DNA of 64,000 bases, from the sequence record MK250027.1; one strand, given 5' to 3'. The notes below the pieces were generated by a model, which was given only the letters and a program-made list of their open reading frames with translations, was not told the DNA's origin and ran no database searches. Positions within the stretch are counted from its first letter, which is position 1, and every line of letters begins with the position of its first letter. Shown here piece after piece: positions 7,646 to 54,464 of this stretch. A program made the translations under genes and the position numbers.

Positions 7646-7686
7646 TTGTATCCTTAAATCAAATTCGTTTCATTATTTATTAGATG

Positions 7687-12887: not shown

Positions 12888-13146
12888 CTATATCAAATAA
12901 AGATTTTATTTACTTATTTATTTAGAGAAAATCATACATGTCAAAATTAAATTGATTATTTAAAATAAGTTAAATAAAACTTTATTATATTATATATTTT
13001 ACTAAACTTTTCTAATAATGTTTATCTATATATAAAATAAAAAAATGATATAATAAAGAAAAAATTCTAAATTACATCATTTATATTAATTTCAAAAATA
13101 TTTTACATTTTCCAAGGATCTACCTTTCTAAAAATATTATTTAATA

Positions 13147-13542
13147 NNNNNNNNNNNNNNNNNNNNNNNNNNNNNNNNNNNNNNNNNNNNNNNNNNNNNN
13201 NNNNNNNNNNNNNNNNNNNNNNNNNNNNNNNNNNNNNNNNNNNNNNNNNNNNNNNNNNNNNNNNNNNNNNNNNNNNNNNNNNNNNNNNNNNNNNNNNNNN
13301 NNNNNNNNNNNNNNNNNNNNNNNNNNNNNNNNNNNNNNNNNNNNNNNNNNNNNNNNNNNNNNNNNNNNNNNNNNNNNNNNNNNNNNNNNNNNNNNNNNNN
13401 NNNNNNNNNNNNNNNNNNNNNNNNNNNNNNNNNNNNNNNNNNNNNNNNNNNNNNNNNNNNNNNNNNNNNNNNNNNNNNNNNNNNNNNNNNNNNNNNNNNN
13501 NNNNNNNNNNNNNNNNNNNNNNNNNNNNNNNNNNNNNNNNNN
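13147..13542. other. Assembly gap (396 N) in the divergent intergenic region
   Basis: Run of N. Confidence 0.99.
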
Positions 13543-13686
13543 TGAAAAAAGTCTACATTATTTTAAATTATTTTTTAATTATTTTTAATGTAATTTTAAC
13601 TAATAAAATAGACTTTTAATTAAGACTTTAATATAATTATGCTATATAAATATAAGAAGAGAAAATTATACATATATAAAAGTAAA

Positions 13687-14712
13687 ATGAAAGTTGATAT
13701 AACATTTGATAACAAATGGTTTGTTGTCAGTTCAAATTATCTATTTGAACTTAATGTTATACGCAGAGCTTTTACAAGGGAAATTCCAAATGCGTGGATG
13801 TTAAAGAAGATTACTGACATACAAATTACTGATAGAGAATTCATGAACAAATATAATATGATTTCTACTAATTTGTGGTTAGAAATTATTAAGGTTGCTA
13901 AAAAGTTCAATATAGCAATGGAAATGACTCCAGCTGCACAGAATTATTTAAATTAGTTTACATTAAAGTTTGAAGATTTTAAGAGTTATATAGATGATAT
14001 TTTTGAAGGTGCAGAAACAGATGAAGGAAAAGAATTTAGACCATATGATTATCAGATAAAAGCGGCGTATACATTATTAAAATATAAAAAATGTTGTGGA
14101 GAAATTTCTACTTCAGGTGGAAAAACATTAATTTCATTCATGATATTCAAATATTTAATTGATACACAAAATATAGATAATATTTTATATATTGTTCCAT
14201 CAGTTGACTTAGCTAATCAATCTGCTGAACAATATGAACGATATGAGTCTTACCTTAAGAAACATAATCATAATTGGGAAATAGGAATTCTTAGGTCTGG
14301 TTTAACAAAGAAACAAAAAGAAAAAGTCGAATCATGTAATATATTGTTTGGAACTTTTCAAAGTCTTTGTAAACGTAAAAAAGAGTTTTTTGATAGATTT
14401 GAATCATGTATAATAGATGAGTGTTGTCATCCAGATACATTAATAACAATGGCAGATGGAAATAAAAAGAAAATTTCTGATGTTGTAGAAGGCGATAAAG
14501 TATTTACGTATAATGAAAACACAAAGAAAAAAGAAATACATGAAGTTGAGTATGTATATAAAAATTTATCATCACATGATGTAATATATGAATTAGAAAA
14601 AGAGGATGGTACATTTATTAAATTAACAGGTAATCATAAAGTTTTAACAAAAAATAGAGGTTATGTACGTGTTGATGATTTAAATATAGATGATGATATT
14701 TTAGAGTTTTGA
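13687..14712 (+). CDS. uvsW: UvsW-like SF2 DNA helicase, N-terminal half fused to N-intein; one TAG=Gln
   Basis: Reading through TAG 13954 joins the ORFs: FRPYDYQ (Q motif), ISTSGGKT (Walker A), CIIDE then intein start CCHPDTLITMADG; ends at TGA 14710-14712. Confidence 0.85.
14422..14709 (+). mobile_element. Split intein, N-terminal fragment (96 aa)
   Basis: Block A CCHPDTLITMADG, block B IKLTGNHKVLT, followed directly by a stop codon. Confidence 0.9.
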
Positions 14713-14719
14713 TTTTTTA

Positions 14720-14761
14720 CTTCTAACATGATGTTTAATTATTTATTCATCATGTTAGAAG
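14720..14761 (+). promoter_or_regulatory. 14-bp hairpin sequestering the endonuclease start codon
   Basis: CTTCTAACATGATG (14720-14733) pairs perfectly with CATCATGTTAGAAG (14748-14761), which contains ATG 14752. Confidence 0.65.
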
Positions 14762-15969
14762 ATATGGGTCTAAGAGAAGTTAATATGGATCAATTAAATG
14801 ATAAATCAATTTTATAGAATGTATTAAAAAATGTAGATATGTCTATACATGTTTGGAATAAACATGATTTTCTTATCAATAATAAAATTAATATAGATTT
14901 ATATAACAATGTATTTTTTAATTTTATCAAAAAATTAAGATTAGATGTTTATAATTTTTTAAAAGATAATTATACGGTAGATACAGTATAGGAATTATAT
15001 AACATGGTTTATGGTAAATCATCTATATGTAAAAAATGTGGTAAAAAATTAGAATTTATAAGATTTAATTAGGGATATAAAGATTGTGATAATTGTTATA
15101 AATTAGAAGCAAATAAATTAGGTACAAAAGACAAAATAATAGATTATATTAATAATACACAAAATACTATACCACTTATATAGTTTATATATAAACATCC
15201 TGTTTTAAAAATAGTTTTTTCAAAATTTCCTAAAATTAATACAGAAGAAGAATTATATTTATTTTTATATAATGATAAACCACATACATGTGAATGTTGC
15301 GGTAATAAAACAAAGTTTGTTAGATTTAGACCATTTCATACATACTCTGTATGGCCATATCATTAGTTTTGTTCAATTGAATGTAGAAATAAATGGTGGG
15401 CATAGAAACAGTGTGAAAATAATACAATATATAGAGCAAATGAAGAAACTTTAAATAGAGTTAAAAATGAGAATAGTATTAGAATGAAATAGAAGATTAA
15501 AGATGGTGAATTTACACCATGTTCAACTAATTCCTGGTGCCATTCTAGATATAAAATAAAATTTATTCAAAATAATAAATTAGTTACAAAATTTTTAAGG
15601 TCTTCATGGGAAGTTATATTTCAATTATTAAATCCTAATTTATTATATGAAAAGTTAAGAGTACAGTATATAGGAAAAGATAATAAATTACATAATTATA
15701 TAGTTGATTTTATAGATATTGATAATAAAATTGTATATGAAGTTAAGCCTGATAGTTGTAAAGAAGTTAGAGATAATATATTAAAAAATAATGCTTTAAT
15801 TAATTGGTGTAAACAAAATAATTATGAAATGCATTATATAGATGAAAATTATTTTTAGAAACATATTTTTAATGTTTCTTTATTAAAATATACAGATAAA
15901 GAATATAAAGATAAATTAGTAAATTTAATTAAAAGATATAAAACATTTAAGGTTGATTATGAAAATTAA
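14752..15969 (+). CDS. Free-standing putative homing endonuclease (Zn-ribbon CxxC motifs + PD-(D/E)xK/TnsA-like nuclease), 405 aa; TAG=Gln
   Basis: Open with TAG=Gln; CKKC, CDNC, CECC, CSIEC motifs; C-terminal RSSWE...YIVDFIDIDNKIVYEVKP; its stop overlaps the IntC start. Confidence 0.75.
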
Positions 15970-16075
15970 GAATATTAGAGTTTTAGAATATAAAGGAGAT
16001 GTATATAATTTGAGAATCAAAAGTGAGAATGAGTAGAATCATAATTATTATGCTAATGATTTATGTATAAGTAAT
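15959..16075 (+). mobile_element. Split intein, C-terminal fragment (39 aa)
   Basis: Own ATG; block F VYNLRI...HNYYAN, block G ending SN followed by Cys+1. Confidence 0.9.
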
Positions 16076-16936
16076 TGTCATCATGTAGGTGCTGCAAAAA
16101 GTTTTAAGGATATTTTACAAAAAACAGAAAATTTAAAATATTCTATAGGTGTAACAGGTACATTTCCTAAAGAAAGTATGTATGAGAATTTATATATACA
16201 ATCTATTATAGGACCTGTAATATATAAGTTAACAGCAAATCAATTAATTAATACAGAGAAAAGAGGAACACCTATATATGCAGTAATTCAATATCTTAAA
16301 TGGGCAGATCAAAAAACAAAGGAAACAATGTATATCTATAGAGCAAATAAAAATCCTATGGATATAGGCGCAGGTAGTAAGGTTCTGAAGATCGAAAGGA
16401 AAACGGTTAATGAATCATATACAAGATTAAAGTATATTTGTGATCAAGTTATCAAGACAAAGAAAAATGCTTTGGTACTATTTGGCGATATTAAATATGG
16501 ATATGGTAGAAAAGTATATGATTATATAAAAGATAATTCAGATAAAAATGTTTATTATACAGATGGAAATACACCAAATAAAACAAGAGATTATTATAAA
16601 GCAGAAATGGAAAAAGATACTTCTGGAAATACAGTGATAGTGGCGTCTATCAATACATTTGGTGAAGGTATCGATATTAAAAATCTTTGGTCTATTTTTT
16701 TGGTTGATACAGCGAAGTCTGAAAGATTAGTAAGACAAATATGTGGTCGTGGAATTCGTTTGTATCCAGGAAAAGATAAAGTTGTTATTTTTGATTTCGT
16801 AGATGATTTGAGATATTCTGCAGATCCTAATAAGAGATATAAAGATAATTATTTATGGAAACATGGTCAAGAGAGAAAGAAAATTTATCTTGAACAACAT
16901 TTCCCTGTATATGAGCAGAAGATAGATTTTAAATAA
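15959..16936 (+). CDS. uvsW: C-intein fused to the C-terminal half of the UvsW-like helicase; one TAG=Gln
   Basis: MKIKNIRVLEYKGDVYNLRIKSENEQNHNYYANDLCISN|CHHVG... restores motif II as DE+CHH; later GVTGT (III), TFGEGIDIKNL (V), QICGRGIR (VI). Confidence 0.85.
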
Positions 16937-16993
16937 TTTAAGAAATTATCGTTTAAAGAATAAATAATTAAACGATAATTTTAAATTTTTATT

Positions 16994-18475
16994 ATGTTGT
17001 TAAGTGAAGTCTTATATATAGCAAAAAATATAAATAAATATAAATCTCTTAATGAATCACTTAAGTCTAATATATTATCTGATATATTTCATAAGTTTGA
17101 TTATTCTAATATAACTATTGAACCTGTTAATAAAAACTATTATATAGGTTATACTGATAAGGGCGTTTCATTTTTTGATGTCAAATTTGAATATCAAAGG
17201 TTAGCAGAAAGAAATTAGTTAACACAAGATATGTGTGATACAGTGGAAGGAAGATAGAAAATTATTAATTGTGATTATAAAAAGAAAAAACGTAAGAAAT
17301 TATGGAATGGAACTTATGAAGATAATGGAATAATATATATGATTATGGAAGCTATCAAAAATAAGTCAACACATAAAATCGGTTTATCTGATATAACAGA
17401 TTCAGAATTAATAACTATATCACCAATAGACGCAAAGAAAAAAATATATAAAACTGGATTACAATTTTGGGTTGATTATGATAATAATCTTAGAGCTGTA
17501 GTAATAGATAACACAATAATATTATATATTTAGCAATTAAATCAATATAATTCATGGTTGAAACCAAATCCAGATTATCACGAGAAAACAGATTTCTCTA
17601 CATTTGCTGATAATAGGAATGATGAGTATTTAGAAAATTTTATAAATAAAGCATTTATTAAAATACCAGTTTATAATATATTAACATCTAATGTAGAATT
17701 AAAGAAAGAATTAGGTGCAAATAATGTTAAATCATTATAGAATGTTCCAGGAATATCAAAAGTATATGTGGTAAATACAGAAGGTATGGAAAATTCCAAT
17801 ATAGAGGAAAAACTAAAAACAAGAAGAGATTATAAAATATTTTTAGAGAGTCAAATAGATCTTAATAAGAAAAATATTGAAAGATATTAGAATGAATTAA
17901 AAATTAGGCGTTCGCAAGGTGTTGATTCTAAAATTATAAATAAGATTTATGATTTCCTTGATGTTTGTATGGATACAACAATAGAATTATAGAATTTAGA
18001 TAATGATGTATTGACAAATAAATCCGCCGATGATTTTATAGGAGATACCTATTGGCATTCTGCACCATTAGATTATGTATATTCATCTGCTTTAAAACGA
18101 ATATATCCAGATAGAAGTTTTTTTGATTCAAAAGTAAGAAATATGTATGGTAGAGGAACACATATGGAAACTAATTGGTCTTTTAATTCTATAGGAGATT
18201 GCTTGGTTGTGGCTAATTTAAAAGTTGAAAAATGTATAGAATATTCATAGTCTATAATTGATAGATATGACAAATATAATAATATAAAGAATAAAGCTGA
18301 TATTTCTTAGGATGAAATATTATATGAGTTGAATATATTAAAATCAAAGTATAAAGAATTAGAAGATTTTCTATCTTATAACTCATCTGTATATAATGAA
18401 ATAAGAAGGCAATTAGATAAAGCTAATATAGATCTTGATAAGATAATGACAAAAATAGATAATTTTCAATTTTAA
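16994..18475 (+). CDS. Hypothetical late protein, 493 aa, N-terminal LNES motif; TAG=Gln
   Basis: Track ORFs 16994, 17339, 17558 and 18011 are in one frame separated only by TAG; TAA at 18473-18475. Confidence 0.75.
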
Positions 18476-18729: not shown

Positions 18730-19485
18730 TTATCTTAAACCATTGTTATTTTTAGGTAATGAAACTCCTATACCATTGGGTGCTCTTCGAGATAAAGACT
18801 ATAAAGCATTTATCTTATGTTTAACTGAAATACCAGGATGCTACTTACTTTCATATTTAGGATTATCTAAATCTAAGTATTCACTGTTTCCATCCTTATA
18901 TGGATCATATTCCTTAGATATTAATTCTCTTTCACCATTAGCATTTCTTATATATACATCATAATAGTTATAAACAAAAGACCATGTAAATGTATTGAAT
19001 GTACCCATTCTGGCTGCATAAGACATAGATAAATCTCCTATACTTGTTGGTGTTAACTATTGATAACAATAACTAACAGTTTCAAATCCACCATCATCCA
19101 ATAAGGAAACAGTTATATTAGGTAGATATAAAGGTGTTAACTATCCTAACCTTAAATATAAATCATATTGATGTCTAGCGACAAAATAACTAATATAACT
19201 TTCTGCAGTTTTAACAGTCAATGTTAATGTTTTCTCTAATAACATGTCTTCCTATTTTCCTGGACGTTTCTATATTTTATATTCTCTTCCTTGCTATATA
19301 ACAGAACCTGAATTTAAGCCTGGAAAATTAATTGATGCAATCTAAGCGTTAAAGAAATCTTCCAATGTTACATAAGGTAAATACATCCTATTTAATATTG
19401 GCATCCACTTTTCTGTAACATCTGGATAAAACCAATTGAAATCCAATGCTATTACGAAATTTTGATCTAGATTATTTAATAACAT
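18730..19485 (-). CDS. Tail tube / tube-initiator-like protein (gp19/gp54-like), 251 aa; TAG=Gln
   Basis: ATG 19485 in frame with track ORF 18841-19026; LTPTSIGDLSMSYAARMGTFNTFTWSFVYNYYDV resembles the C-terminal tube-fold pattern. Confidence 0.5.
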
Positions 19486-19553
19486 TTTTAATTAAACTAT
19501 ATGATTGTTTGTATATTTATTGAAGATTATTTTTTATTTTCAAATATTTTATG

Positions 19554-21068: not shown

Positions 21069-21105
21069 TTTTTTGATTTTATTTTTTTGTTTGAAATAAA
21101 ATATG

Positions 21106-21113
21106 TATCTTTG
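21106..21113 (+). promoter_or_regulatory. Bacteroidota -7 promoter element
   Basis: TATCTTTG with TTTG upstream. Confidence 0.75.
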
Positions 21114-28133: not shown

Positions 28134-28175
28134 AATTTCTTCTATAAATAGATAGAATAAAGAAAATTAGGAATA

Positions 28176-29300
28176 ATGCCTAAGAAAGTTTAGTTTGAAG
28201 AATTTGAGTAGAGATTAAAAAATAAATTTGGTGATAAGTTTAAATATATTGATTTAAGTTTAATAGATAAAGAAAACTTTAATTATTTAGATAAGTATCC
28301 TATTAAATGTTTAATACATAATAAAATAGCATATAAAGAGCCGAAAATCTTTTTAAGATCTACAACATTAAATATATGTAGTAAATGTCAAAGGGAATAG
28401 CAAGTTCGTGATTCACATAAAATGCATGAAGGTAAAGAAAGACATTATACATCAGTTGATGAATTTCTAGAGCGTTTATATTAGAAATATAAAGATAAAA
28501 TAACTATTGATAAAAATGATATTTTATTAAATAAAAATGGTTCAGTAAATTTTTCATAGAAAATGAAATTTATATGTCAAAAACATGGTGAATTTTATTG
28601 TAAACCATCCGATATATTTCGTTCAACTCATGGATGCTCAAAATGTGCTAATGAATATATGAAATTAAAAAATATTCAATATGGTGAAGAACGAAGATAG
28701 TCATTTATAAATGATGCTATTAAAATTCATGGTAATCAATATGATTATTCAAAGGTTGATATAACAGGTAAACTAAAAAAAGTTGAAATTATATGTAAAG
28801 ATCACGGTTCATTTTTTATGATGCCATCTTTACATTTAAGAGGTGAAGGTTGTAAACTTTGTAATAAAACAAATTTATTAAATTGTGAACGACGTTTATA
28901 TCAAATATTAATTGATAATTTTCCTAATGAAGAAATTATTAAATAGTATCATAACTTTTTAGGAAGACAAAGTTTAGATTTTTATTTTCCTAAATATAAA
29001 ATAGGAATAGAATATCAAGGTAAGCAACATTTTGTTACTAGTGAATATTTACATAATGACACAAGGCATTCATTAAAACATTAGAAAGAACTTGATGAAA
29101 AGAAGTTCAATAAATGTAAAGAACATAATGTTACACTTTTATATTTTACATTTGATAAATAGTATGAAAATATTGAATATTACTCAAAACTATATGTAAA
29201 TATAAAAGACTTAATTGAAAAAATACAATATATAATAAATAATTACAATGTTTGCGTTAATAGTAATACAGACATTGAGCAACAAAAATTAAATACATAA
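28176..29300 (+). CDS. Putative homing endonuclease (repeated C-x2-HG...GC-x2-C modules + Vsr/DUF559-like nuclease), 374 aa; TAG=Gln; absent from the ORF track
   Basis: Manual translation: HGNQYDYSKV...IICKDHGSF...GEGCKLC; LDFYFPKYKIGIEYQGKQHF; several in-frame TAG. Confidence 0.8.
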
Positions 29301-29306
29301 TAAATT

Positions 29307-31855
29307 ATGAGCAACAAAAAAGTAGTTGGAATTGATTTAGGTACTGGAAACAGTGCGGTAGCCATCATCGAGAATGGCGTAGCTAAAGTAATTGAAAATG
29401 CAGATGGTTATAAGACAACTCCATCTGTAGTGTACATCAAGGGTGATGAAACAAAAATTGGTGCAGCCGCAAAACGTGGTATGGTAATGAATCCAAAGAA
29501 TACCATTTCATTTGTAAAGCGTTTTATGGGTGCTAAATGGGATGATCCTGATGTACAGAAGATGTTAAAGATGGTAACATATGATGTTATCGATGAAAAT
29601 GGAAATCCTCGTCTTAAGATTGACGATAAAACATATTCACCAGAGCAAATTTCATCTATGATTCTTAAGAATATGTATGAAGTTGCAAAGGGATTCTATG
29701 GAACAGAAGATTGTAAAGACGCTGTTATTACTGTTCCTGCATGGTTTAATGATATTCAGCGTAATGCTACAAAGGTAGCAGGTCAGTTGGCTGGTTTGAA
29801 TGTTCTTCGTATTATTAATGAGCCAACTGCAGCAGTTCTTTCTTCAAATATTGATACAAAATCTGGAGATAAGATTGTTCTTGTTAATGATCTCGGTTGT
29901 AAATATTCTGTTACTGCATCCGCGCTTGCTGCTTAATCACTAAAGCAAGTGTAAAGTTAAAAACCCGTTAATTGCTGAGAGTCCCACGTTAGTTATATAC
30001 TAATGATAAAAATGGTCTTAAATACCGCTATTAGATGGTGACATACTAATTAGCACCAACTTTAATGTGTTGGGTATGGTAAAAAGTTTAAGAATTGGGT
30101 GACCGCCGTAAATCTTAAAATATATTAAGATAGAGCAGCCAAGTATCTTGGTAACAAGATAAAGGTTCAACGACTAGAAAAAGTAATCCTATTAATTTAT
30201 GAAGAAATTTCCACGAATGCGGGTTAGTTTAGAAGTGGTACAAGTGATATAAGATAAATATTTAAAGTATTTATTTATCTTATGATTAATACATAGTTCT
30301 TTGATTTATTGATTAAACACATATTTAAATTATATGATGAAAATAATAATTTGGAATTTAAGTTTGTGTTTGATTATGAATTAAATGAATTTAATCAATA
30401 ACTTCTAAATGAAAGAGATAGTCTTGAGGAATGAAAGTTCCTCGGTAAGATAAAGAGCTTACAAAGTTAAATAGAAACAAATAGGGTACAGAGGATGTTT
30501 CTATTGTTGAGATTTCTGATGGTATGATTGAGGTTCTTGCATCTGATGGTGATGTGTTCCTTGGCGGTCAGAATTATGATAATGCCATTGTTCAGTGGCT
30601 TATCGATGAGTTTAAGAAAGATACAGGTATTGATTTGAGTAAGGATAAGATGGCATATGCACGTCTTGTAGAGGCAGCAGAGAAAGCAAAGTGTGAGTTG
30701 TCAACTACTACTCAGACAGAGATTAACCTTCCTTATATTACTGTATCTGATGGTGTTCCTCAGATGTTGATTAAGACTCTTAATCGCGCTACATTTGAGA
30801 GACTTACAGAAGATCTTACAAATAAGGTTGTAGAGATTGCACATCGTGCTGTAGAGAAGGCAGGTATTACAGAGGATCAGATTAGTGAGATTCTTCTTGT
30901 TGGTGGTTCTTCACGTATTCCTTCAGTTCAGGATGCATTGGAGAAGTCATTTAACAAACCTTTGAATAAGACCTGTAATTTTGATGAGGCTGTTGCACTT
31001 GGTGCTGCTATTCAGGCAAATACACTTGCAGGTAATGCAACAGAGGATTCAGTACTTCTTTTGGATGTTACACCAATTTCACTTGGTATTGAGGTAAATG
31101 GTTGTGAGATGGCTAAGTTGATTGAAGCTAATACAACTATTCCTACACGTAAGTCACAGACATTTACAACTGCAGTAGATAATCAACCAGCTGTAACTAT
31201 TAAGGTACTTCAGGGTGAACGTCCAATGTCCGCTGATAATAAGGTAATTGGTACATTTAATTTGGAGGGTATTGCACCAGCTCCTAAGGGTGTTCCTCAG
31301 ATTGAAGTAACATTTGATATTAATGCGGATGGTATTCTTGAAGTAACTGCAAAGGATAAGGGTACAAATAAGGAACAGAAGGTAACAATTCAGTCTCCTA
31401 ACGCACTTTCTGATGAAGAGATTGCACGTATTAAGGCAGATGCTGAGAAGTTTGCAGAAGCAGATAAGAAGAAGAAAGAGGAAGTTGATAAGTTGAATAC
31501 TGCAGAACAATATGCAACACAGGTTCAGAAGTATATTGATGATGAGAAAACAGGTGCATCTGTTCCATCTGATAAGAAAGAAACATTGAAGACAAAGATT
31601 ACTGCAGTTCTTGATGCAGTTTCTAAGAAGGATGTATCAGCAGCAGAGACTGCACGTGCAGATCTTGAAACTGTATTTAAACCTATTGTTGAGGAAATGT
31701 ATAAGAATGCAGGTGGTGCAACAGCAGGTCAACCTCAGAATGAATCACAGGGAAATCCATTTGCTAATGCAGGATTTGGTGATGCAAATGCTTCAACTTC
31801 TGATACTAAGGCAGATGATGACGTTCAAGAGGCAGATTTTGAGGAAGTAAAGTAA
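29307..31855 (+). CDS. dnaK: DnaK/Hsp70, two exons (29307-29900 and 30485-31855) split by a group I intron
   Basis: GIDLGTGNS, TVPAWFND, INEPTAA; splicing gives VNDLGC|GTEDVSIVEISDG (canonical DLGGGTFDVS); LVGGSSRIP, LLDVTP, EAD..E tail. Confidence 0.95.
29901..30484 (+). mobile_element. Group I self-splicing intron (584 nt) without a full-length ORF
   Basis: Exon ends in U and intron ends in G; core elements AATTGCTG, GCAGCCAAG, GGTTCAACGACTAG and AGAGATAGTC (P7 GACTA/TAGTC); removal restores the frame and the conserved motif. Confidence 0.9.
30282..30401 (+). pseudogene. 39-codon intron-internal ORF, probable homing-endonuclease remnant
   Basis: MINTQFFDLLIKHIFKLYDENNNLEFKFVFDYELNEFNQ with one TAG; ATG sits in a 12-bp hairpin in the peripheral loop. 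Confidence 0.4.
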
Positions 31856-32039: not shown

Positions 32040-33128
32040 ATGGCAAAAGACTTGTATGATATATTAGGTATTGAGAAAGGTTGTAATGATCAGAAAAAGA
32101 TTAAAACTGCATTTAGACAACTTTCTAAGAAATACCATCCAGATATGCAGAGAGGAAAATCAGATGCAGAGGTAAAGGAAGCTGAGGAAAAGTTTAAGGA
32201 TGTTAACCATGCATATGAAGTTTTGAGTGATCCTCAAAAGAAAGAGAATTATGATAATTTTGGTGATGAAAATGGAAGACCAAATCCATTTGGAGGCTCC
32301 GGTGGTTTTAATCCATTTGGTGGTGATTTTGATCCATTTGGAGGATTTAATCCATTTGGAGGATTTGGTGGAAGTTCACGTCAGAAGAAAAATCAGGTTC
32401 AACCAGGTAGAGATATTCAGATGAAGATTCCTGTATCTATTGAAGATATATTTAAGGGAGTTAAGAAGAGTGTTAAATTTAAGAGAAACGTAAGGTGCTC
32501 TGTATGTCATGGTGCAGGTGGAACTGGTCAGAAGACATGTCCAAAGTGTCATGGAACTGGTAGAATTATTCATCAGCAGCAATTTGCAATGGGGTCATTC
32601 TCTATTCATGAAGAAGTTTGTCCATTGTGTCATGGAACTGGTTTTTATGTAGAGAACAAATGTGATAAGTGTGGTGGTTCTGGATTTGATAAGAAAGAAG
32701 TAAAACTTGATATTGAATTACCATCTGGTGTACAGAATGGAGAATATCGTGTATATAGTGGTGAAGGATCCGAATCAAAGAATGTTTCAGGACCTAATGG
32801 TAATTTTATCGCTATTGCAGATTATACGTTTGATACAGATAGGTATCAGGTTGATGGGTTGAATGTAGTTGAACATATTCATGTCCCTTATTATAAATTG
32901 TTGCTTGGCTGTTCATATACTCTTAATATTCCTTCTGGTGTAAGTAAGGTTGTTAAGTTGAAGAGTTGTATTAAGGAAGGAACAATTATGAGATTAACTG
33001 GTGAAGGACTTAAGAGACCTGATGGTCAAAAGGGTGATTACTTCATTTGTGTTCATTATCAATTTCCAGAAGACCTTAGTGCGAATGATAGAGCATTGCT
33101 TGAAGTTATAGAGAAAAACAATAAATAA
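32040..33128 (+). CDS. dnaJ: DnaJ/Hsp40 co-chaperone
   Basis: J-domain HPD, G/F region, four CxxCxGxG repeats. Confidence 0.95.
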   Translation: MAKDLYDILGIEKGCNDQKKIKTAFRQLSKKYHPDMQRGKSDAEVKEAEEKFKDVNHAYEVLSDPQKKENYDNFGDENGRPNPFGGSGGFNPFGGDFDPFGGFNPFGGFGGSSRQKKNQVQPGRDIQMKIPVSIEDIFKGVKKSVKFKRNVRCSVCHGAGGTGQKTCPKCHGTGRIIHQQQFAMGSFSIHEEVCPLCHGTGFYVENKCDKCGGSGFDKKEVKLDIELPSGVQNGEYRVYSGEGSESKNVSGPNGNFIAIADYTFDTDRYQVDGLNVVEHIHVPYYKLLLGCSYTLNIPSGVSKVVKLKSCIKEGTIMRLTGEGLKRPDGQKGDYFICVHYQFPEDLSANDRALLEVIEKNNK

Positions 33129-33194
33129 TATTTATTAAAACAATTTAGCTATTTTTATATATAAATAAAAATAGCTATTTTTATTTTGTAAACC

Positions 33195-33581
33195 ATGGAA
33201 GATTTTAGTAAAGTAGAAGGTATTAAGACTAAAGGTGGAAAACCTTATGTGTAGAATAAAGAACTTATGAAAGAGATTGTACTTTCAAAGTAGAGAGATG
33301 AACTTACATATAACGCTGTTGTTATGCTTTAGTTAATTGCCGAAAATTTAGCAAAGAAAAAACATTATAAATGTCAAGAGGATAAAGAAGATTGCATACA
33401 AACAGCAATGATGGATGTTGCCATGTATTGGAGAAGCTTTGACCCTGAGAGATTTAATAATCCATTTGCTTATTATACAAGTATGTTATGTAATGGATTA
33501 TCAAAAGGATGGAATAAGATATATGGTAAATTTAAAGCATCTGAGATGACAAGTCTTGACAACAATATACATTCATTTTAA
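33195..33581 (+). CDS. T4 gp55-like late-transcription sigma factor, 128 aa; three TAG=Gln; absent from the track
   Basis: YVQNKEL...EDCIQTAMMDVAMYWRSFDPERFNNPFAYYTSMLCNG matches the gp55 pattern (YVNNKEL; FDPEK..NPFAYFT). Confidence 0.8.
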
Positions 33582-33600: not shown

Positions 33601-34134
33601 ATGCCTGCATATGATAGTTATATTGCAGAACATGGAACTGCAATAAGTGATTTAACATTGAAGAAAATGTTAGTTAATAAAAAAGATATTTAGGATAAAA
33701 TTAATAATACATTTGCATATGAAGATACGCCAGCTGTAATTCCTGGTAAATCTATTGATGATACAATAGATAAACAATTAGATTCTTTGAATGAAGATAC
33801 TGGTATGAATTCATTGATTACACAAGCAGCAATGATGAAAGCAAAAAGTGAGACTGATAAAAAAGAAGATTTAAAACAAAAAACAGAGCGACGTAAGAAT
33901 TTCATTGAATCTATGATGTATCAGCAAGGTGAACTTTATTATCAACAACATCATTATTTTATGGATGGTAAGACAAAACGTAGAGTTCGTAAAGCAGTTG
34001 AACGTGCATATGATAAAGGTAAGTATAATAAGAGCGGAATTTATTTTGAACAACCACAAACAAAGACTATTATTAGAAAACCAAAGAATACTAATAAGGA
34101 ACCAGTAAATATGCAAGATATGTTAAAGATGTAA
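33601..34134 (+). CDS. Hypothetical protein, 177 aa; one TAG=Gln
   Basis: ATG 33601 in frame with track ORF 33787-34134. Confidence 0.7.
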
Positions 34135-35594: not shown

Positions 35595-35636
35595 ATAAGA
35601 GATTATAGTTTTTTGTATACTATAATCTCTTATTTT
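35595..35636. terminator. Bidirectional terminator between convergent genes
   Basis: AATAAGAGATTATAG-loop-CTATAATCTCTTATT. Confidence 0.7.
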
Positions 35637-36082
35637 TATAAATCTAAATCATATGTATCTAAATTAATCATCTATAAATGTAATGTATCATGCTCTTTAT
35701 CGAATTTCTATTCTATTTTCTTTATTCTTCCTTCAATTTGTGACCAATTTTTATTTGCATGATTTATTGTATCTACCATGTGATTAATTACATTTTTTTG
35801 TTTAACTACATCATGATGAATATGTTCTAAATCTCTATCCATATCCTATCCATTTTTGAATATAATGTTACCAGCACCTTTTAAATTACCGAATGCAGTA
35901 ATAGCATTTATACCAATTAATGAGTTTTCATCAAAATAATATGCAACAGCTTGTTCACCAGGGGATAAATGTTTTGACATTAAATTTTGATATGCTTCTT
36001 CATAACATACGAATGGATAACGGTTATATGAATTTATATTTGATTTAGCAGTAGGTAATATTTCGTATTGATTGTTATTCAT
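35636..36082 (-). CDS. Hypothetical late protein, 148 aa, paralogue of the 56657 N-domain; TAG=Gln
   Basis: Reads through TAG 35846 to TAA 35636. Confidence 0.7.
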
Positions 36083-36153
36083 CTTAATTAAAACTAAACT
36101 TTATATATTTATTGAAAATCAATAAATAGAATAAAGGTTTAATATCATAAATA

Positions 36154-36678
36154 ATGGAAAAGGATATTATATTAGCTAAAGGTAATATATAGAATGTGCT
36201 TAAACGAATAGGCGTATATAAAAGTAATTTATTTTGTATAGGTGAAGATGATATAACAAAATCAGGTGTTATTGTATGTAACGGTGATATTATTTCTTCA
36301 CGTATATTAGATATTACTATAAAGGCCGGTGGTGCAACTGGTAGTATGTTATCATATAATTAGAATTATATTAATCATATAGATGTAAAATATGTTGATC
36401 CTAATGATAAAGATATAAAAACAATGTCATTTAATATACTTGATAATGATGCTTTAATTGAAATTATTAAGTTTATCACAGAAAAATAGCAAGATAAAGA
36501 AAACATCGAAAAAATTGAGAAAAACTAGCTAATTTTTGATGAAAAACTTAAAAAAATCTAGCAATTTTTAATCGAAAATAAAACACAGATAGAATGTATT
36601 GGAGAATTGAAAAACTAGATTTTAGATATGAATAATAAACTTGATGTTTTACTTACAGAAAGAAGTTTAAGACATTAA
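36154..36678 (+). CDS. Hypothetical protein with C-terminal coiled coil, 174 aa; TAG=Gln
   Basis: Manual translation MEKDIILAKGNIQNVLKR..., six TAG. Confidence 0.65.
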
Positions 36679-42231: not shown

Positions 42232-42993
42232 ATGTCTAAAGATGATTTAGTAAATATACAAGAACAACCAGGAATTTATATGATTTAGAATGATATAAAT
42301 AAAAAATGTTATATAGGCTAGAGTATAAATTTACATACAAGATTGTTACATCATATAAATAATTCTATAAATAATCGTTATAATGCACCAATATATAGAA
42401 CATTTAAAAAATATGGTATAGAAAATTTTTCTGTATATATTTTAAAAAAATTTGATAATCCTATAACTACATATATTAAAGAATAGTTAGATATTTATGA
42501 GAAGAAATATATTAATGAATATAATAGTTATGGAAGCACGGGATATAATCAAACAAAAGGTGGTGATGGAGGTATAGATGGATATAAATTTACTAAAGAA
42601 CAAAAATTAACAATTTCTAAAAATTCGTATAAAATATAGAATGATGGTAGAAATACAATATATTGTTATGATATAAAAAATAATAAATTTATTGAATCAA
42701 CATCATTATAGGAATTAAAACGATAGTTAAATGTTAATTTTAGAACAGGATGTATTAGAAATTTATTAATATATAATCAATATATTTTATCACGTTCAAA
42801 AGATGATTTATTATAGAAAATTAATAAGTATAATAATAAATTATAGGAGTATAATACAAATGGTTGTAGTAAATTAACTCATGAAATGAAAGATGATATA
42901 ATTAATAATATATCAGAAAAAGAATTTCTTAGTAAATATAATGTATGTAAATCTACATATTATCATTATAAAGAAAAATTAAATATATCTTAA
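42232..42993 (+). CDS. GIY-YIG homing endonuclease, 253 aa; TAG=Gln; absent from the track
   Basis: PGIYMI(Q)NDINKKCYIG(Q)SINLHTRLLHH...YEKKYI...GYNQTKGG; TAG falls on the conserved YIGQS Gln. Confidence 0.9.
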
Positions 42994-43016
42994 TTGCGTG
43001 TATTAAGATATAGTAT

Positions 43017-43088
43017 TGGGGATTAGTATAGTGGTCAGTACAGAGGTCTCTAAAACCTTTAGGCCGAGTTCGAGTCTCGGATCCCCAA
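43017..43088 (+). tRNA. Amber suppressor tRNA (anticodon CUA), Gln-type
   Basis: Acceptor TGGGGAT/ATCCCCA (U1-A72), D stem GTAT/GTAC, anticodon arm GAGGT-CTCTAAA-ACCTT, T arm CCGAG-TTCGAGT-CTCGG. Confidence 0.92.
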
Positions 43089-43130
43089 CAATTAAATGAC
43101 ATAAGTAATATTTTAAAGATTTGATGAATT

Positions 43131-44944: not shown

Positions 44945-45351
44945 GGGGATGAATTTGGATTTGCTTATTAATTATGTGGTAATAAATCGTGTAGGAAAGT
45001 TAATAGCCTTTTGTAGTAATACAAAGAAACTTAGCAAATAAATTTAAATGACGACGAAATAGAATTTCGTATGGCAGCTTAATCCTGATAGGATTGGTAA
45101 TATACACCCATTGAAGCATTTGCTCCTTATACGGTAAGTTTGAGCATTGCCACGGAGTTCGTAAGAGTGATAATCTCTGTTAAATAAAACTCTTACATAT
45201 ACTTATTCATTGTCCAATAAGAGTGATTATGACATTAAACTGTTTAACTCTAATAACACAGATATAAATGAAAACTAATAAAGACATACGCACGTAGATA
45301 GTTTATTATTGACATGTTAGTAATACGTGGTTTCGAGTACCACCATCTCCA
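44945..45351 (+). ncRNA. ssrA: tmRNA; tag reading frame ...DDEIEFRMAA* (about 45050-45082)
   Basis: 5' GGGGATG pairs with 3' CATCTCC-A including the G3-U70 Ala determinant; T arm GTGGT-TTCGAGT-ACCAC; internal tag ending AA-stop; exact resume codon uncertain. Confidence 0.88.
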
Positions 45352-45490
45352 CATTTTTAGATTATATTTCATAATATAGAATTTTTAATTGTTTAATTTT
45401 GTAAATGAGTTGTATGTTTAGATAAACATATGACTCATTTTTTTGTATAATAATAAATAAGATAATAAAACTAAATATAAGCATAAATAT

Positions 45491-47377
45491 ATGCCAACTA
45501 AATTTATAGCAAGAAAGTTTAATCCAGGGAAAGCAGATCATAATAAAATAAATACACTTATTAATCTGTCTTCACTTAGTTTAAATTCAGCATAGAGTAT
45601 TCTTAAAACTTCATTGGCTTTAGGATCTACTCAAACAAGTAATTATTCTGGTGATTCATTAACACCGTTTAATGATATTTTAAATCAAGATTAGAATAAG
45701 TTTACATAGTATGCAGATATTACTAAAAATACAAGTTAGTCTTATGCATACTATGATTTGTCATATCAATAGAGAAGAGAATAGTTAAGGTAGTTTGCTT
45801 CACAACAAACTATTTCATTTGTTTTAGATACTATTGCAGATGAATCTATTATATTGGATGAAAATAATTATTTTGCATAGTTAGATTTAAATCTTCTTAA
45901 ATTAAAACTTAATACTAATTATAAAGGTGCAAATGGAGAAACTGCTGATGATTTAATAAAGAATTGTCAGAAAGCATTTAAGATTATATATTCAACATAT
46001 GGATGGGATAAATCTAATGATGCATGGAATTATTTTAAGAAATTTCTTATAGAAGGTTATCTTGCATTTGAGATTGTTGTTGATAATCTTATGAAACCTA
46101 CAAGAATCATAGGTATGAGGGAATTGGATCCTGCTACATTGGAACCTGATATTGAAATTGATCCAATGACAAATAAAGAAGTAAAGGTTTGGTATCAATA
46201 TAAAGGTGACGCATAGTTAGAAAGGAAAATTCCAGATTCTAATATTGTATATATATCATGGTCAACAGGTATGTATGGAGAGTAGTCACGTGTATCATAT
46301 CTAGAAGGTTTAATAAGATCATATACAATGTTAACATAGTTGGAGACTTCTCGTATGGTATGGAATATCATGAATGCATAGAAAAGAGTTAAAGTAGGTA
46401 TTCCTGTAGGTAATATTTCTTAGGATAAAGCTCGTGCACGCGTAAATGAAGTTAAAGCAGATTGGAATGAAGAAACAACAGTTGATGAAATATCAGGTGA
46501 GATGGTAGTAAATGGACAACCACGATTCTCATTTTCAAAGACACATTTCTTCCCTGTACGTGATGGTAATTCAATGACTATAGAAGAAATCCCAACAGAA
46601 GGATATGATTTAAGTGATATTACTCCATTGAAATATTTCTGGAGGCGTTTTATATTAGAAACTAAAATACCAGCTAATAGATTTATGATTGATCCTGCAG
46701 CAGAAGGAGCGCATCCATTGGGTGGTGATGATGCAAGTATAACACGAGAGGAATATGCGTTTGGACGTTTTATTAGTCGTGTTAGAAATATATATCGTGA
46801 AATTTTGTTAAAACCATTATGGGTACAAATATGTTTAATGATGCCAGAGTTAGCAAGTTCTGAATTATTGAAACAATGTATAGGTATTGTTTTTAATGAA
46901 GAAAATATGTTTGTTAAAGCAAAAGAAAGAACTGCGTTAAAACAAGGCGCGGAAATTATAGGTACATTAGCATAGATTCAATTAGGTGAGAATAAACCAT
47001 TCTTTAGTATGAAATTCTTAATTGAGAAATTCTTAGGTATGTCTGATGAAGATTTTGCACTTAATGAGAAATATAAACAAGGTGAAATTATAGAGCGCTT
47101 AGAACAAGCTAAAACTATTAAACAACATCAAGAAATGGGTAAACAAGTTGGTGAACAACAAGGTAATGGAACTCCTGGTGAAATGGATTTCGGCGGAGGT
47201 TCTGATGCAGGTGGCGGAAGTTCATTTGACGATTCATTTGGAGGCGGTTCTGATGCAGGCGGTGATTTTTCTGGAGGTGATGAAGTATTCTCTGGTGGTG
47301 ACACTGGTATGGGATCCGGTGGTTCTGAAATTGCAGATACTGGTGGCGGTGATGAAGGTGGAGGTGACTTCGCTTAA
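45491..47377 (+). CDS. Portal vertex protein (T4 gp20-like), 628 aa; many TAG=Gln
   Basis: LDTIADESI, GIPVGNIS.DKA, FFPVRDG..TIEEIP, LKYFWRR...IPANRF, ITREEYAFGRFISRVR; Gly/Asp-rich tail. Confidence 0.88.
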
Positions 47378-47461
47378 TCAAAATATTAAAGGATTAGATA
47401 TTGAATTATCTAATCCTTTATTCATTTAAAAATAAATATATTAAAATATATTATTATAATA

Positions 47462-48091
47462 ATGAGTGATAAATAGAAACATTTTTATGGATGTTTACCA
47501 TCTAAATTGGATGGTACAGAACATATAGTAAATGTTGATTCAAAAATAGTATTACCAGATGAATTTTCATTGCGTGATGTAATGCCGCCAGTAAGAGATC
47601 AAGGAAACACATAGACATGCGTATGTTAGTCTTTAACTGCAATGTTGGATTTCCTTCATAACAGTAAAGTAGGAACTGATGGTAAATGTAATAATTATTC
47701 TATAAATGATTTGTATAGATAGAGATCTAATTATCCATAGGAAGGCATGTCAATTAAAGAAGCTATGAAAATTCTTAAGGATAAAGGCCTAAATGGAGAA
47801 AAGATTAATTCATACGCATTAGTTCCATCAGTAGAAGTTATGAAAAGAACTTTAGTTATGTTTGGACCTTGTTGCGCTGGATTACCTGTGTATTCTGATA
47901 ATGATCCATATTTTTGGAAGAAAGGTTGTGAATATGCAGGGGGTCATGCGATCTGTATTTGTGGATATAATAAAAGAGGATTTATTATTAGAAATTCGTG
48001 GGGAAGTTCATGGGCAGATCATGGATATATAACGATTCCTTATGATGAATATGAAGATTCTGTATTTGAAGCATGGACTGCAATTTTATAA
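47462..48091 (+). CDS. Papain-like (C1) cysteine peptidase, 209 aa; TAG=Gln
   Basis: VRDQGNT(Q)TCVC (oxyanion Q, catalytic C), GGHAICICGY, IRNSWG. Confidence 0.85.
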
Positions 48092-51484: not shown

Positions 51485-51559
51485 GGTCCGTCTGGTGTAA
51501 TTGGTAACATGACAGATTGTGATTCTGTTGTTCAGGGTTCGAGTCCCTAACGTGACCCA
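51485..51559 (+). tRNA. tRNA-His(GTG), imperfect acceptor stem
   Basis: ACAGA-TTGTGAT-TCTGT anticodon arm, G-1/C73, TTCGAGT loop. Confidence 0.8.
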
Positions 51560-51576
51560 AAATATTATTAATATTT

Positions 51577-51652
51577 AGCGTAGTGGCCCAGTTGGTCTAA
51601 GGCACCTGTTTTGGGAACAGGTTAGATCGCACGTTCGAATCGTGTCTACGCT
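51577..51652 (+). tRNA. tRNA-Pro(TGG)
   Basis: AGCGTAG/CTACGCT; CCTGT-TTTGGGA-ACAGG. Confidence 0.9.
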
Positions 51653-51767
51653 ACAGAATAGAGTTCTTATGTTATCCTTACATAACTAAAAGAACTAAAA
51701 CTTAAGATGGTAAGGCATCTATATAATGGAAGTTCACGCCCAAGGGAAGATTTATAAGTTATAATTT

Positions 51768-51842
51768 ACTCTGTTAACTCAATTGGATTAGAGTATTTCG
51801 CTACGAACGAAAAGGTTGTGAGTTCGATTCTTACACAGAGTA
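51768..51842 (+). tRNA. tRNA-Arg(ACG)
   Basis: ACTCTGT/ACAGAGT; TTTCG-CTACGAA-CGAAA. Confidence 0.9.
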
Positions 51843-51851
51843 CAAGTAAAT

Positions 51852-51924
51852 ATCTCTATAGCTCAAAAGAATAGAGCAGTTCTCTCCTAAAGAACAGATA
51901 ACAGTTTGATTCTGTTTGGAGATA
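51852..51924 (+). tRNA. tRNA-Arg(CCT), T-loop TTTGATT
   Basis: ATCTCTA/TGGAGAT; GTTCT-CTCCTAA-AGAAC. Confidence 0.8.
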
Positions 51925-52441
51925 CAAACAAAATTAACATTATTAATATAGACTTTTATCTATTAATGGAATATATTATAATGTAATTTGAATTTTAAAA
52001 TACTATTAAAATGTGGGGAGTAGAGTTCCCATCATTTAAAGAGTTTCGAGAAGAAGGTATTGTATGTAAAAGCATTAAGTTTCGTTTAGCTGACGAAATG
52101 TTACCAAGCGGTGATGGTATTCATGTACATAGGTCCATCCGTATAACTTCAGGGAATCGTAAGCATTAATCTTGGAGAGTACAGTTTTTAGTCTGAAATG
52201 ACGAATTTTCCTACTGGTTGCTCAATATGATATTAAGAGTCGGAGATAATTATTTGTAAGTTCCACAATTACGAGAGGAAAATGGAATTAAGTTGAAGGA
52301 ATAACGTGATTATTCTTGGTGTGATTAGGAGAACGAAAATAACCAGTATGTATGGTGTACGTGTGCATACAGAAACAAAGCAAATAATAGCCCTTAGAGA
52401 ATTTGCCGAGTAAAGGACATTAATAGTATTTTTATTTATTT

Positions 52442-52519
52442 GCAGTATTGGTGTAGCTGGAGGCGCATTCCTGACTTCCACTCAGGCGGCTTGCGCGAGT
52501 TCGATTCTCGCATACTGCT
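52442..52519 (+). tRNA. tRNA-Gly(TCC)
   Basis: GCAGTAT/ATACTGC, U73; CCTGA-CTTCCAC-TCAGG. Confidence 0.9.
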
Positions 52520-52728
52520 CATAATAAGGTAGAGTATCAATGAATGATAGAGAATAAGTTCCTGTCTGAGATCAACCTATCTGTAGTATTTAGATAATTT
52601 TATGTATACATAAAATTATAACGAAGTTTATATTACCTGTAGTCGTAATATTCAAATCGTTCGTTGACATAGTTATTCCGTGATGTAGTAGAGAGTTATA
52701 ATCAGCATATAACAAACGGAATATTTTT

Positions 52729-52801
52729 GCGGAAGTATATCAATGGCTAGATAGATACGTTGCCAACGTATAGGTTGTGAGTTCGAGTCTCATTTTCCGC
52801 T
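52729..52801 (+). tRNA. tRNA-Gly(GCC)
   Basis: GCGGAAG/TTTCCGC, U73; ATACG-TTGCCAA-CGTAT. Confidence 0.9.
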
Positions 52802-52944
52802 CTATAAACGTTTCGAGGTTTTAAAGTTGAATGTACCACCTTGCGCTTGTGTTGCTATTCACCTTTGAGTAATAGTAAAAAACTTATGGTACCAAGGATG
52901 TTTTCTACGTTGTTACATCCATTTTTTTGAATATGATAGAATAT

Positions 52945-53089
52945 GAGAGTCAATACAGCAAATTAAATTGATAGATAATGTTTGAAGATTATACACAAAA
53001 AGACTCTTGAATCAAATTATAATGGGAGGCAATACAGCAAATTTTGTATTAAGGATTATTTTGCTAAAATAATATTCTATACGCCTCCT
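52945..53089 (+). ncRNA. Two tandem structured RNA elements sharing CAATACAGCAAATT
   Basis: Copy 1 closed by AGAGTC/GACTCT, copy 2 by GGAGGC/GCCTCC. Confidence 0.5.
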
Positions 53090-53096
53090 GATACTT

Positions 53097-53179
53097 GACG
53101 AGTTGCTGAGAATTGGTTAATCGCACGGTCTGCAAAACCGTTGGTCTTTGACATGTCGGTTCGAGTCCGACACTCGTCT
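53097..53179 (+). tRNA. tRNA-Cys(GCA) with a 13-nt variable arm
   Basis: GACGAGT/ACTCGTC, U73; ACGGT-CTGCAAA-ACCGT. Confidence 0.9.
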
Positions 53180-53212
53180 CTTTAGATTAATATTTTAAAA
53201 TACTATTATAAG

Positions 53213-53473
53213 ATGAAGAAATTATTTTCTTTTATATTTTATACAATAATGATTACATCATTATTTGGATGTGCAACAAAACAAGATACAATTAATTATC
53301 TTAATAATTATGTACATAAAAATATTTCTGAAAATTGTATAAACATTTTCAGTAATCAAAGATATAATGAATATATTGATACTGTTACTAATATTAAATA
53401 TTATGTTTATATAGATTATAATAGTAACATCAATATAACAGATAAAAGATTTCCGAGGTATACAGCTCGTTAA
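53213..53473 (+). CDS. Small putative lipoprotein
   Basis: MKK + hydrophobic stretch + LFGC lipobox. Confidence 0.65.
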   Translation: MKKLFSFIFYTIMITSLFGCATKQDTINYLNNYVHKNISENCINIFSNQRYNEYIDTVTNIKYYVYIDYNSNINITDKRFPRYTAR

Positions 53474-53771
53474 AAGAGGTTGACTTGTATATTCTACATT
53501 ACCTACTGTATAACAATATATGAGTGTACATGTGAAAAGATACACCATGTTCTATTAATATAAAAATGTACATATATATGGTAACAATTATATTAATATC
53601 AGATGCATGACATATATGAATATAATAACGAATTCGTGAAATGACTATTGTTTTTAGTTGCTTGGAAACGGCGAACTTAGTTTTATCAATAGAGGAAGTA
53701 TAATATTAAAACAGTTAAATGTAAATCTTTCTGAGACAATGGGGACAACTTGTAGTAAGAGAGTATTTTTA

Positions 53772-53886
53772 GCTAGTATAGTTTAGTGGCAAAACACCCA
53801 AATCCCAGGGATAAGAGATGGTTTGAGTTGTAGTGTACAATACAATATACAGAAGATTTTGGTGAGTTCGATTCTCACTGCTAGCT
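53772..53886 (+). ncRNA. tRNA-like RNA (Gly-like ends) with an extra ~44 nt in the central region
   Basis: GCTAGTA/TGCTAGC-U, D arm GTTT/AAAC, T arm GTGAG-TTCGATT-CTCAC; no canonical anticodon arm. Confidence 0.6.
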
Positions 53887-53892
53887 CAATAT

Positions 53893-54022
53893 GAAGTGCG
53901 TAGTTTAAATGGTAAAACATCCTTTGAGTAGGACTCTGACGAGAGATAGATAACAATGTTAGACTCTATTTAATTCCATTGTTTTATTAATGAGTATAGG
54001 TTCGAATCCTATGGTACTTCCA
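53893..54022 (+). ncRNA. tRNA-like RNA with ~60-nt central expansion
   Basis: GAAGTGC/GTACTTC, D arm GTTT/AAAC, T arm ATAGG-TTCGAAT-CCTAT; irregular anticodon arm. Confidence 0.6.
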
Positions 54023-54310
54023 AATTTATATAGATAAAAAGATTCTGGTGATTAGATAAAACATTATAAGAAAAGAGAAAAAACTTAGGTAACTGCAGAT
54101 AACTAAGGGTCGTAAGAGTATATGAAGAAAGATGAACTATGGATACCTCCTTATAATGCGTTTTATCAATAATTAAAGTAGTCTATAATATAAGTTCATT
54201 AACGTTATAGAAAAAACGAATATTGATAAGTCTACTATGCAGATGGGGCATTGAGAATGCCGTATAGTTCTAAAGCATCGTAAAACAGTTTATTTATATA
54301 TTTTTAATAT

Positions 54311-54385: not shown

Positions 54386-54464
54386 CAGTGTTTTTAGTTG
54401 TTTATTAATGATTTGAGATATATCAATTTTTGGTATATCTCTTTTTTATTTAGAAAATAATTTG

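Follow-up and report, generated by a model that had tools for sequence, protein, structure and literature searches.

A 64-kb stretch of sequence record MK250027.1 (hereafter the window) carries on its plus strand a gene for a predicted late sigma factor of the phage T4 gp55 family, and the frame of this gene is crossed by three TAG codons. The locus raises the question of whether a phage that reads TAG as glutamine (Gln) has made its late transcription dependent on that reassignment. Can the sigma factor be made before the code is switched, and does it serve genes that are themselves recoded? The gene and its TAGs, which a first-pass annotation had correctly placed within the first 46 codons, are listed here, with relatives under our own labels (L007 and so on).

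33195-33581, plus strand: gp55-family late sigma factor gene, 128 codons, ATG start, TAA stop, TAG read as Gln
33252-33254, plus strand: in-frame TAG at codon 20, right after the invariant Tyr18-Val19; TAG in Lak-A, Lak-B, Lak-C and L012, CAA in L007
33291-33293, plus strand: in-frame TAG at codon 33; TAG in Lak-A, Lak-B and Lak-C, CAA in L007, L010 and L011
33330-33332, plus strand: in-frame TAG at codon 46; TAG in Lak-A, Lak-B, Lak-C, L008, L009 and L010, CAG in L007

The window (G+C 26%) comes from a Prevotella megaphage of the Lak-B type, in which TAG is read as Gln; this 540-kb phage of the gut is uncultured. A tblastn search with the translated sigma open reading frame (ORF) found matches of 96-98% in all Prevotella phage Lak genomes. 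The Lak-B genomes matched at 97.7% with mismatches only at the three TAG positions, and the DNA of the locus is identical across 520 nucleotides (nt) to that of Lak-B5 (MK250024), the complete genome on which all our genome-wide tests were run (509 ORFs called). With TAG treated as sense, ORFs of 100 codons or more covered 80% of the window, up from 47%. No gene in the window ended in TAG, and TAA was the main stop codon of Lak-B5 (451/509 genes). Both in the window and among the Lak-B5 ORFs, in-frame TAGs occurred in structural genes and were absent from another class of genes. The TAG-rich genes of the window encode the portal, protease, tail tube, baseplate hub, tape measure, and three homing endonucleases, and its TAG-free genes include RNA ligase, dnaK/dnaJ, and phosphoribosyl pyrophosphate synthase. 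Lak phages have been reported to read TAG as Gln and to encode a tRNA with anticodon CUA (tRNA-CUA) and release factor 2 (RF2) (PMC6784885, PMC8346664), and their host uses the standard code (10.1101/2021.08.26.457843; PMC8346664). The RF2 gene of Lak-B5 (286783-287856) scored above the curated cut-off and was itself TAG-free.

Under translation table 11 the sigma frame ended after 19 residues, in line with the earlier expectation that the host code would yield at most a 19-amino-acid (aa) peptide. Read through with TAG as Gln, its predicted product belongs to the T4 gp55 family, an assignment that is well supported in silico and bears out the first-pass annotation. The best profile was phrog_234, 'late sigma transcription factor' (E = 4e-11), followed by phrog_12791 (E = 4e-4), and T4 gp55 was the sole match among all PDB sequences (E = 0.014, residues 12-102). 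The tblastn search also found annotated late sigma factors of Sinorhizobium, Synechococcus, and Xanthomonas phages. NCBIfam gave a partial sigma-70 region 2 only, with TIGR02937 matched at model positions 17-63. A structure predicted with AlphaFold2 from 24 homologues had a predicted local distance difference test score of 86, and its first-ranked Foldseek match was 7d7c_F, which is gp55 within the T4 late RNA polymerase open complex (probability 1.00, template modelling scores 0.69/0.64, with an E-value of only 8e-3). Region-2 domains of sigma-E and sigma-S came next. By sequence and model, then, the Lak factor is a short protein with a region-2-like domain only and no region 4, as in T4 gp55.

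Finer likenesses to T4 gp55 lie at both ends of this small, highly divergent protein. The invariant Tyr18 aligned to T4 Tyr10, one of the N-proximal aromatic positions that are absolutely conserved in gp55 (PMC2988020). The C-terminal tail (...TSLDNNIHSF) was conserved across homologues and low-confidence or disordered in the model, and shares SLD and a terminal aromatic residue with the T4 tail (...SLDFLYEAND), which is the clamp-binding epitope of gp55 (PMC2988020). A search of Lak-B5 for a gp45-like clamp with T4 gp45 as the query returned nothing, a result that is uninformative. The two proteins differ in that the Lak factor has 128 aa rather than 185 and has no counterpart of the T4 stretch from residue ~110 to the tail, that the Lak host belongs to the Bacteroidota, and that the Lak gene contains recoded stops, a device absent from T4. 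A single gp55-like gene is present in Lak-B5. The rpoB and rpoC families had no match in that genome, which makes a multisubunit phage RNA polymerase unlikely, with divergent forms possible.

Suppression of the three TAGs would fall to a tRNA encoded downstream of the sigma gene.

43017-43089, plus strand: suppressor tRNA with anticodon CUA, Gln-like (ARAGORN; Rfam tRNA model, 61.7 bits)

This was the top-scoring tRNA of the window by Rfam. It has U1-A72, G2-C71, G3-C70, and the D-arm in common with the phage tRNA-Gln(UUG) and tRNA-Gln(CUG), and we take these acceptor pairs to be identity elements for glutaminyl-tRNA synthetase. The tRNA-CUA of Lak-C1 carries a compensatory change in the anticodon stem. 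Two conserved residues in the alignments point to the same amino acid: the invariant Gln of CIQTAM was encoded by TAG in six lineages and by CAA or CAG in the rest, including standard-code relatives, and the Gln codon of SKEQDELT was TAG in L049 vs CAA or CAG in L048 and L050. As judged from these alignments, TAG in the sigma gene is decoded as Gln.

Several observations concern the tRNA genes themselves. Ahead of the tRNA-CUA there is first a TAG-free block and then, directly upstream, a GIY-YIG homing endonuclease gene (42232-43089 region, plus strand) that is TAG-rich and needs this tRNA for its own translation. The same arrangement was present in Lak-C1 (locus L130), and all three homing endonuclease genes of the window were TAG-rich. 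Lak-B5 also encodes a tRNA with anticodon UUA (340103-340175, plus strand), which reads TAA although TAA is the main stop; such a tRNA has previously been reported in Lak (PMC8346664).

We compared the sigma orthologue in 11 TAG-recoded lineages at 54-100% identity. All three TAGs were present in Lak-A1, Lak-B5, and Lak-C1, and eight more divergent Lak-like contigs (62-83% identity) and L049 (54%) had in-frame TAGs in every sigma orthologue. The counts over the 11 lineages were 3, 3, 2, 3, 4, 3, 3, 5, 1, 4, and 2, and the sigma genes of standard-code relatives contained none. The need for TAG suppression to obtain full-length sigma, proposed from this one sequence, thus extended to every TAG-recoded relative examined. 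The genes on either side were of another kind.

32040-33128, plus strand: dnaJ-like gene upstream of sigma, TAG-free; 0/53 Gln-type codons are TAG in four relatives
33601-34134, plus strand: conserved gene downstream of sigma with no assigned function, TAG-poor

Among Gln-type codons in eight lineages, TAG made up 25/42 in sigma, 0/88 in dnaK and dnaJ together (p = 7e-16 against sigma), and 2/45 in the gene downstream (p = 2e-8 against sigma). From these codon counts, sigma belongs stably to the recoded class and forms an island amid standard-code neighbors.

What would a gp55-like factor transcribe? The late box considered here is (A/T)ATAAATA, that is, TATAAATA or AATAAATA. The first-pass annotation had cautioned that an AT-rich background could inflate box numbers, and in abundance the boxes were indeed unremarkable: the window had 29 copies of TATAAATA vs 44.5 expected and 37 of AATAAATA vs 44.7 expected, so that neither was over-represented. 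Placement, by contrast, was non-random. A box stood 22-39 nt (about 35) before the ATG of 13/18 genes with at least two TAGs and of 2/35 others (Fisher p = 8e-7), which upheld the claim that such boxes precede most TAG-rich genes; the boxes that the annotation had listed all exist, each on the strand of the gene it precedes, and are given here together with one more, at 10018.

7674-7681, minus strand: late-type box AATAAATA, 36 nt before the ATG of a TAG-rich gene of 2443 aa
10018-10025, minus strand: late-type box before gene 7748-10003
12915-12922, minus strand: late-type box before gene 11916-12896
16959-16966, plus strand: late-type box in a hairpin loop, before gene 16994-18475
19514-19521, minus strand: late-type box before the tail-tube-like gene 18730-19485
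28143-28150, plus strand: late-type box TATAAATA before the HNH endonuclease gene 28176-29300
36106-36113, minus strand: late-type box before gene 35636-36082
36121-36128, plus strand: late-type box before gene 36154-36678
45452-45459, plus strand: late-type box before the portal gene 45491-47377
47431-47438, plus strand: late-type box before the protease-like gene 47462-48091
56625-56632, plus strand: late-type box before the baseplate-hub-like gene 56657-58030
60610-60617, plus strand: late-type box before gene 60645-63998 (open-ended)

The pattern held across Lak-B5. In an unbiased test of upstream k-mers, ATAAATA ranked first (78/159 TAG-rich vs 33/281 TAG-free genes, p = 3e-17), and (A/T)ATAAATA was associated with TAG-rich and structural genes at -40 to -26 (p = 5e-17), where box starts formed a sharp peak. 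Genes behind late boxes held 569 TAG vs 983 CAA/CAG codons. The two positions 5-6 nt past the box were conserved as AA (70/74 and 64/74), and no conserved -35-like element was present upstream of the boxes. The Lak box resembles the T4 late promoter (TATAAATA) in having no -35 element and in placing a conserved A at the distance where T4 late transcripts start, the predicted start site. It differs in that its first position is mostly A rather than T; A at this position, A(-13), is the commonest variant of T4 late promoters (PMC2988020). A triple cluster of TATAAATA within the GIY-YIG gene (42294-42373) was judged to be a chance product of coding sequence and set aside.

A second promoter class, which the first-pass annotation had not described, preceded TAG-free genes.

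21104-21113, plus strand: early sigma-A-type promoter core TGTATCTTTG, one of eight in the window
19552, 24491, 43737, 48157, 50606, 54463, and 55039, plus strand: other early modules in the window, with the TGTATCTTTG core

All eight early modules of the window lie before TAG-free genes. In Lak-B5, a 57-nt module with TGTATCTTTG as its core is present in 54 nearly invariant copies; TGTATCTT ranked second in the k-mer test (0/159 TAG-rich vs 39/281 TAG-free genes, p = 2e-8), and genes directly behind the modules contained one TAG vs 190 CAA/CAG codons. The core resembles Bacteroidetes sigma-A promoters, with the -7 element TAnnTTTG present as TAtcTTTG and a T/A-rich part upstream; this -7 motif is known from the Bacteroides literature (e.g. 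PMC12632263, PMC4747536). The phage copies differ from those promoters in being parts of a far longer and nearly invariant module. The module was often followed by a shared leader, AACAATTAAAAATATAAA, ahead of the ATG. A third (middle) class was sought in 163 unassigned upstream regions, which gave only terminator tails and a shared leader. By these sequence criteria there are two clean promoter classes in the genome, and they track TAG use. The coupling of promoter to TAG content is well supported in silico, and the description of the two classes is new.

Taken together with the T4 literature, these results fit a circuit that we consider probable, with some reserve: the single gp55-family factor, itself TAG-recoded, would direct host RNA polymerase to the late promoters, and the suppressor would be needed twice. 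While host release factor 1 reads TAG as a stop, only the 19-residue peptide would be made. Once the phage tRNA-Gln(CUA) reads codons 20, 33, and 46 as Gln, the full-length factor would most likely, by analogy with T4, guide the host enzyme to (A/T)ATAAATA promoters that drive the TAG-rich portal, protease, tail tube, baseplate, and tape measure genes. Late expression would then depend on suppression both for making sigma and for translating the late mRNAs, in the manner of a coherent feed-forward loop.

Several observations weigh against this circuit or against reading it as a selected checkpoint. The first-pass annotation had host promoters acting first and the suppressor tRNA following, and this order was not borne out: a scan with a position weight matrix (PWM) of the early module found none upstream of tRNA-CUA or sigma (best non-site 0.5 vs at least 30 at real sites), so that the appearance of tRNA before sigma is an assumption. 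The link from sigma to ATAAATA is drawn by analogy, from T4 homology. Among Lak-B5 genes that have an upstream region to themselves, the box was missing before ~38% of the TAG-rich and present before 13% of the TAG-free ones. Lak replication genes are also largely recoded (10.1101/2021.08.26.457843), and 'recoded' is therefore not simply 'late structural'. Within the sigma alignment the TAGs were spread over 14 columns and their sites turned over. The TAG share of sigma was 60% vs a mean of 45% for the TAG-rich class (pooled p = 0.06), and by TAG density the gene ranked 44/509 in Lak-B5. Its TAG load is typical of TAG-rich genes and not exceptional. With a share not significantly above that of its class and a rank of 44, selection for a checkpoint, which the first-pass annotation had advanced, is not demonstrated; a checkpoint is a plausible consequence of how sigma is encoded.

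The evidence is divided on how the sigma gene itself is transcribed. Two overlapping features precede it.

33147-33187, plus strand: hairpin and T-run resembling an intrinsic terminator, after dnaJ (RNA fold -12.8 kcal/mol, z = -4.9)
33160-33167, plus strand: TATAAATA box, possible weak late promoter, 35 nt before the sigma ATG, in the hairpin loop and right arm

The box and the hairpin around it were found where the first-pass annotation had put them, with a 12-bp stem and 6-nt loop (33147-33176) and the T-run at 33177-33187; the stem has only two G-C pairs, and a simple scanner missed the terminator. The box had been read as a sign of positive autoregulation. We put even chances on another account, in which the box is no promoter and simply forms the loop of the dnaJ terminator, and sigma is expressed by read-through or from an unrecognised middle promoter. 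The fold of hairpin and T-run speaks for it, as does the pattern among relatives: in Lak-A and Lak-C the box is gone and three compensatory changes keep the stem, the hairpins that L007 and L013 have at this place are unrelated and contain no box, and the box is also absent in L012. The full-site PWM score is 3.8, below the 8-10 or more of typical late sites (-4.7 in Lak-A and Lak-C), and the conserved A at the predicted -1 is lacking. On the other side, the box matches the motif at all eight positions and stands exactly at -35, the modal distance, a hairpin loop also holds the box of another late gene (16994), and boxes are present at -38, -37, and -31 in L008, L010, and L014, where sigma is either first in a transcription unit of its own or preceded by a long gap. 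A transcript begun 5-6 nt past the box would moreover miss the left arm and escape the hairpin. With the box in a terminator loop and not conserved in Lak-A and Lak-C, autoregulation is doubtful; it is possible in this strain and, from the alignments, not a conserved feature.

Sigma may also tolerate its TAGs passively. If the gene is expressed only after the code switch, TAG would be a neutral synonym of CAA and CAG that drifts without any regulatory role, an account that we find possible and somewhat on the improbable side. It accommodates the turnover of TAG sites among lineages and the share of 25/42, which is not significantly different from 45%. With about five Gln-type codons per gene, at least one TAG per lineage is expected in any permissive gene, and the TAGs of sigma lie mainly in its variable N-terminal third, where Gln is tolerated. 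It accounts less well for a gene that is TAG-rich between TAG-free or TAG-poor neighbors in nearly all lineages, an isolation which indicates that class is maintained gene by gene, or for the mild genome-wide 5' bias of TAGs (chi-square p = 0.01), which CAA and CAG do not have (p = 0.31). Whatever the origin of the TAGs, there would be no sigma without suppression. The first-pass annotation had proposed a check of whether TAG is conserved at these sites in relatives: the recoded state persists in 11 lineages, and the individual sites turn over. The strongest form of the proposal, in which the master regulator of late transcription is deliberately kept recoded throughout the TAG-recoded Lak-like clade and the code switch, beyond filtering late proteins, is the upstream trigger of the late program, strikes us as unlikely. 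If it were true, the phage would have a coherent feed-forward circuit of two layers, in which the suppressor tRNA permits sigma, sigma activates the late promoters, and the resulting mRNAs call for the suppressor once more. This circuit could time lysis and block late expression in cells where the code switch fails.

That ATAAATA is read by another factor, either a TAG-free sigma-70-family protein or a host sigma with an adaptor, leaving the gp55-like protein a different or smaller regulon, appears improbable. Lak-B5 does encode two full-length TAG-free sigma-70-family proteins (193461-194474, minus strand, and 334772-335707, plus strand). One of these genes comes second after an early module, which makes its product a candidate middle sigma. 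The other, though TAG-free, is preceded by a good late-type box at -38, a further point against the circuit proposed above. The assignment of promoter to sigma by analogy and the lack of a clamp match with the T4 gp45 query also leave room for such a factor. Against it, the motif, its A(-13) variant, the missing -35 element, and the start-site A all fit the gp55 promoter type, and the gp55 fold match is specific. Full-length sigma-70-family factors normally require -35/-10 pairs, which weighs in the same direction. That functional sigma is made early without any gating, whether by leaky read-through of the TAGs, with a factor brought in by the virion, or from an internal start, is highly improbable, given that three serial TAGs multiply any leak, that the next ATG is at codons 72-73, past helices 1-2 and the invariant N-terminal Tyr, and that the host uses the standard code.

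The circuit that we favor, in which suppression is needed both for sigma and for the mRNAs it calls up, extends a published model. Recoding as a regulator of late or lytic genes has been proposed for Lak, crAss-like, and other gut phages (Borges et al., 10.1101/2021.08.26.457843). Our phage shares with the recoded gut phages of that and earlier work (PMC6784885; PMC8346664) the reading of TAG as Gln, the suppressor tRNA-CUA with RF2, recoded structural genes beside others compatible with the standard code, and a proposed code switch during infection. The accounts differ in what they say of transcription: 'sigma' and 'promoter' have no occurrences in 10.1101/2021.08.26.457843, Devoto et al. (PMC6784885) mention sigma factors only generically and no promoter, other Lak papers treat neither sigma nor promoters, and our literature search found no paper in which recoding is linked to a late sigma factor. 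What is new here is that the late sigma gene is recoded, that this state is conserved, and that two classes of promoter track TAG use. Whereas in the published model recoding acts after transcription, on late proteins, a sigma that needs the suppressor would place the code switch above late transcription as well. This gives a concrete and testable circuit for the order of the program in a 540-kb uncultured phage. The 54 host-type modules and about 110 T4-type late boxes would make it possible to predict from sequence alone when genes are expressed in Lak and related huge phages, and sigma, promoter, and tRNA-CUA are defined parts for testing in Bacteroidales.

Some further features of the neighborhood were recorded. 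The conserved gene at 33601-34134 lies directly 3' of sigma in 7/8 divergent lineages and has the core YQQGELYYQ.HHY.MDGKTKR. It was considered as a gp33-like co-activator and dropped, having no family match and no clamp-type tail; no gp33 homologue was identified in our searches, none of which was aimed at gp33. Upstream, the HSP70/DnaK-like gene is in two parts (29307-29936 and 30524-31855, plus strand) with ~590 nt between them, which match phrog_22485 at positions 2-194 and 209-612. No Rfam intron at the split reached its gathering score, and the split is also present in the relatives L007 and L013. The dnaK and dnaJ genes are TAG-free and unusually rich in CAG for this genome, a codon pattern that suggests recent acquisition.

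Among RNA features, a tRNA-like match of 115 nt (53772-53886, plus strand; Rfam 36 bits) lies in the tRNA cluster at 51485-54386 and is possibly a tRNA with an insert. A tmRNA-like (transfer-messenger) RNA at 44945-45354 (plus strand), just upstream of the portal gene, matched RF00023 at 47.3 bits (gathering score 47, E = 1.3e-15) and had no ARAGORN call. A 396-N run at 13147-13542, masked or a gap, overlaps part of a minus-strand ORF and the region upstream of a DNA helicase gene (13639-16936, plus strand). The helicase gene is broken by a TAG-rich HNH endonuclease gene (14728-15969), with one TAG in each helicase half.
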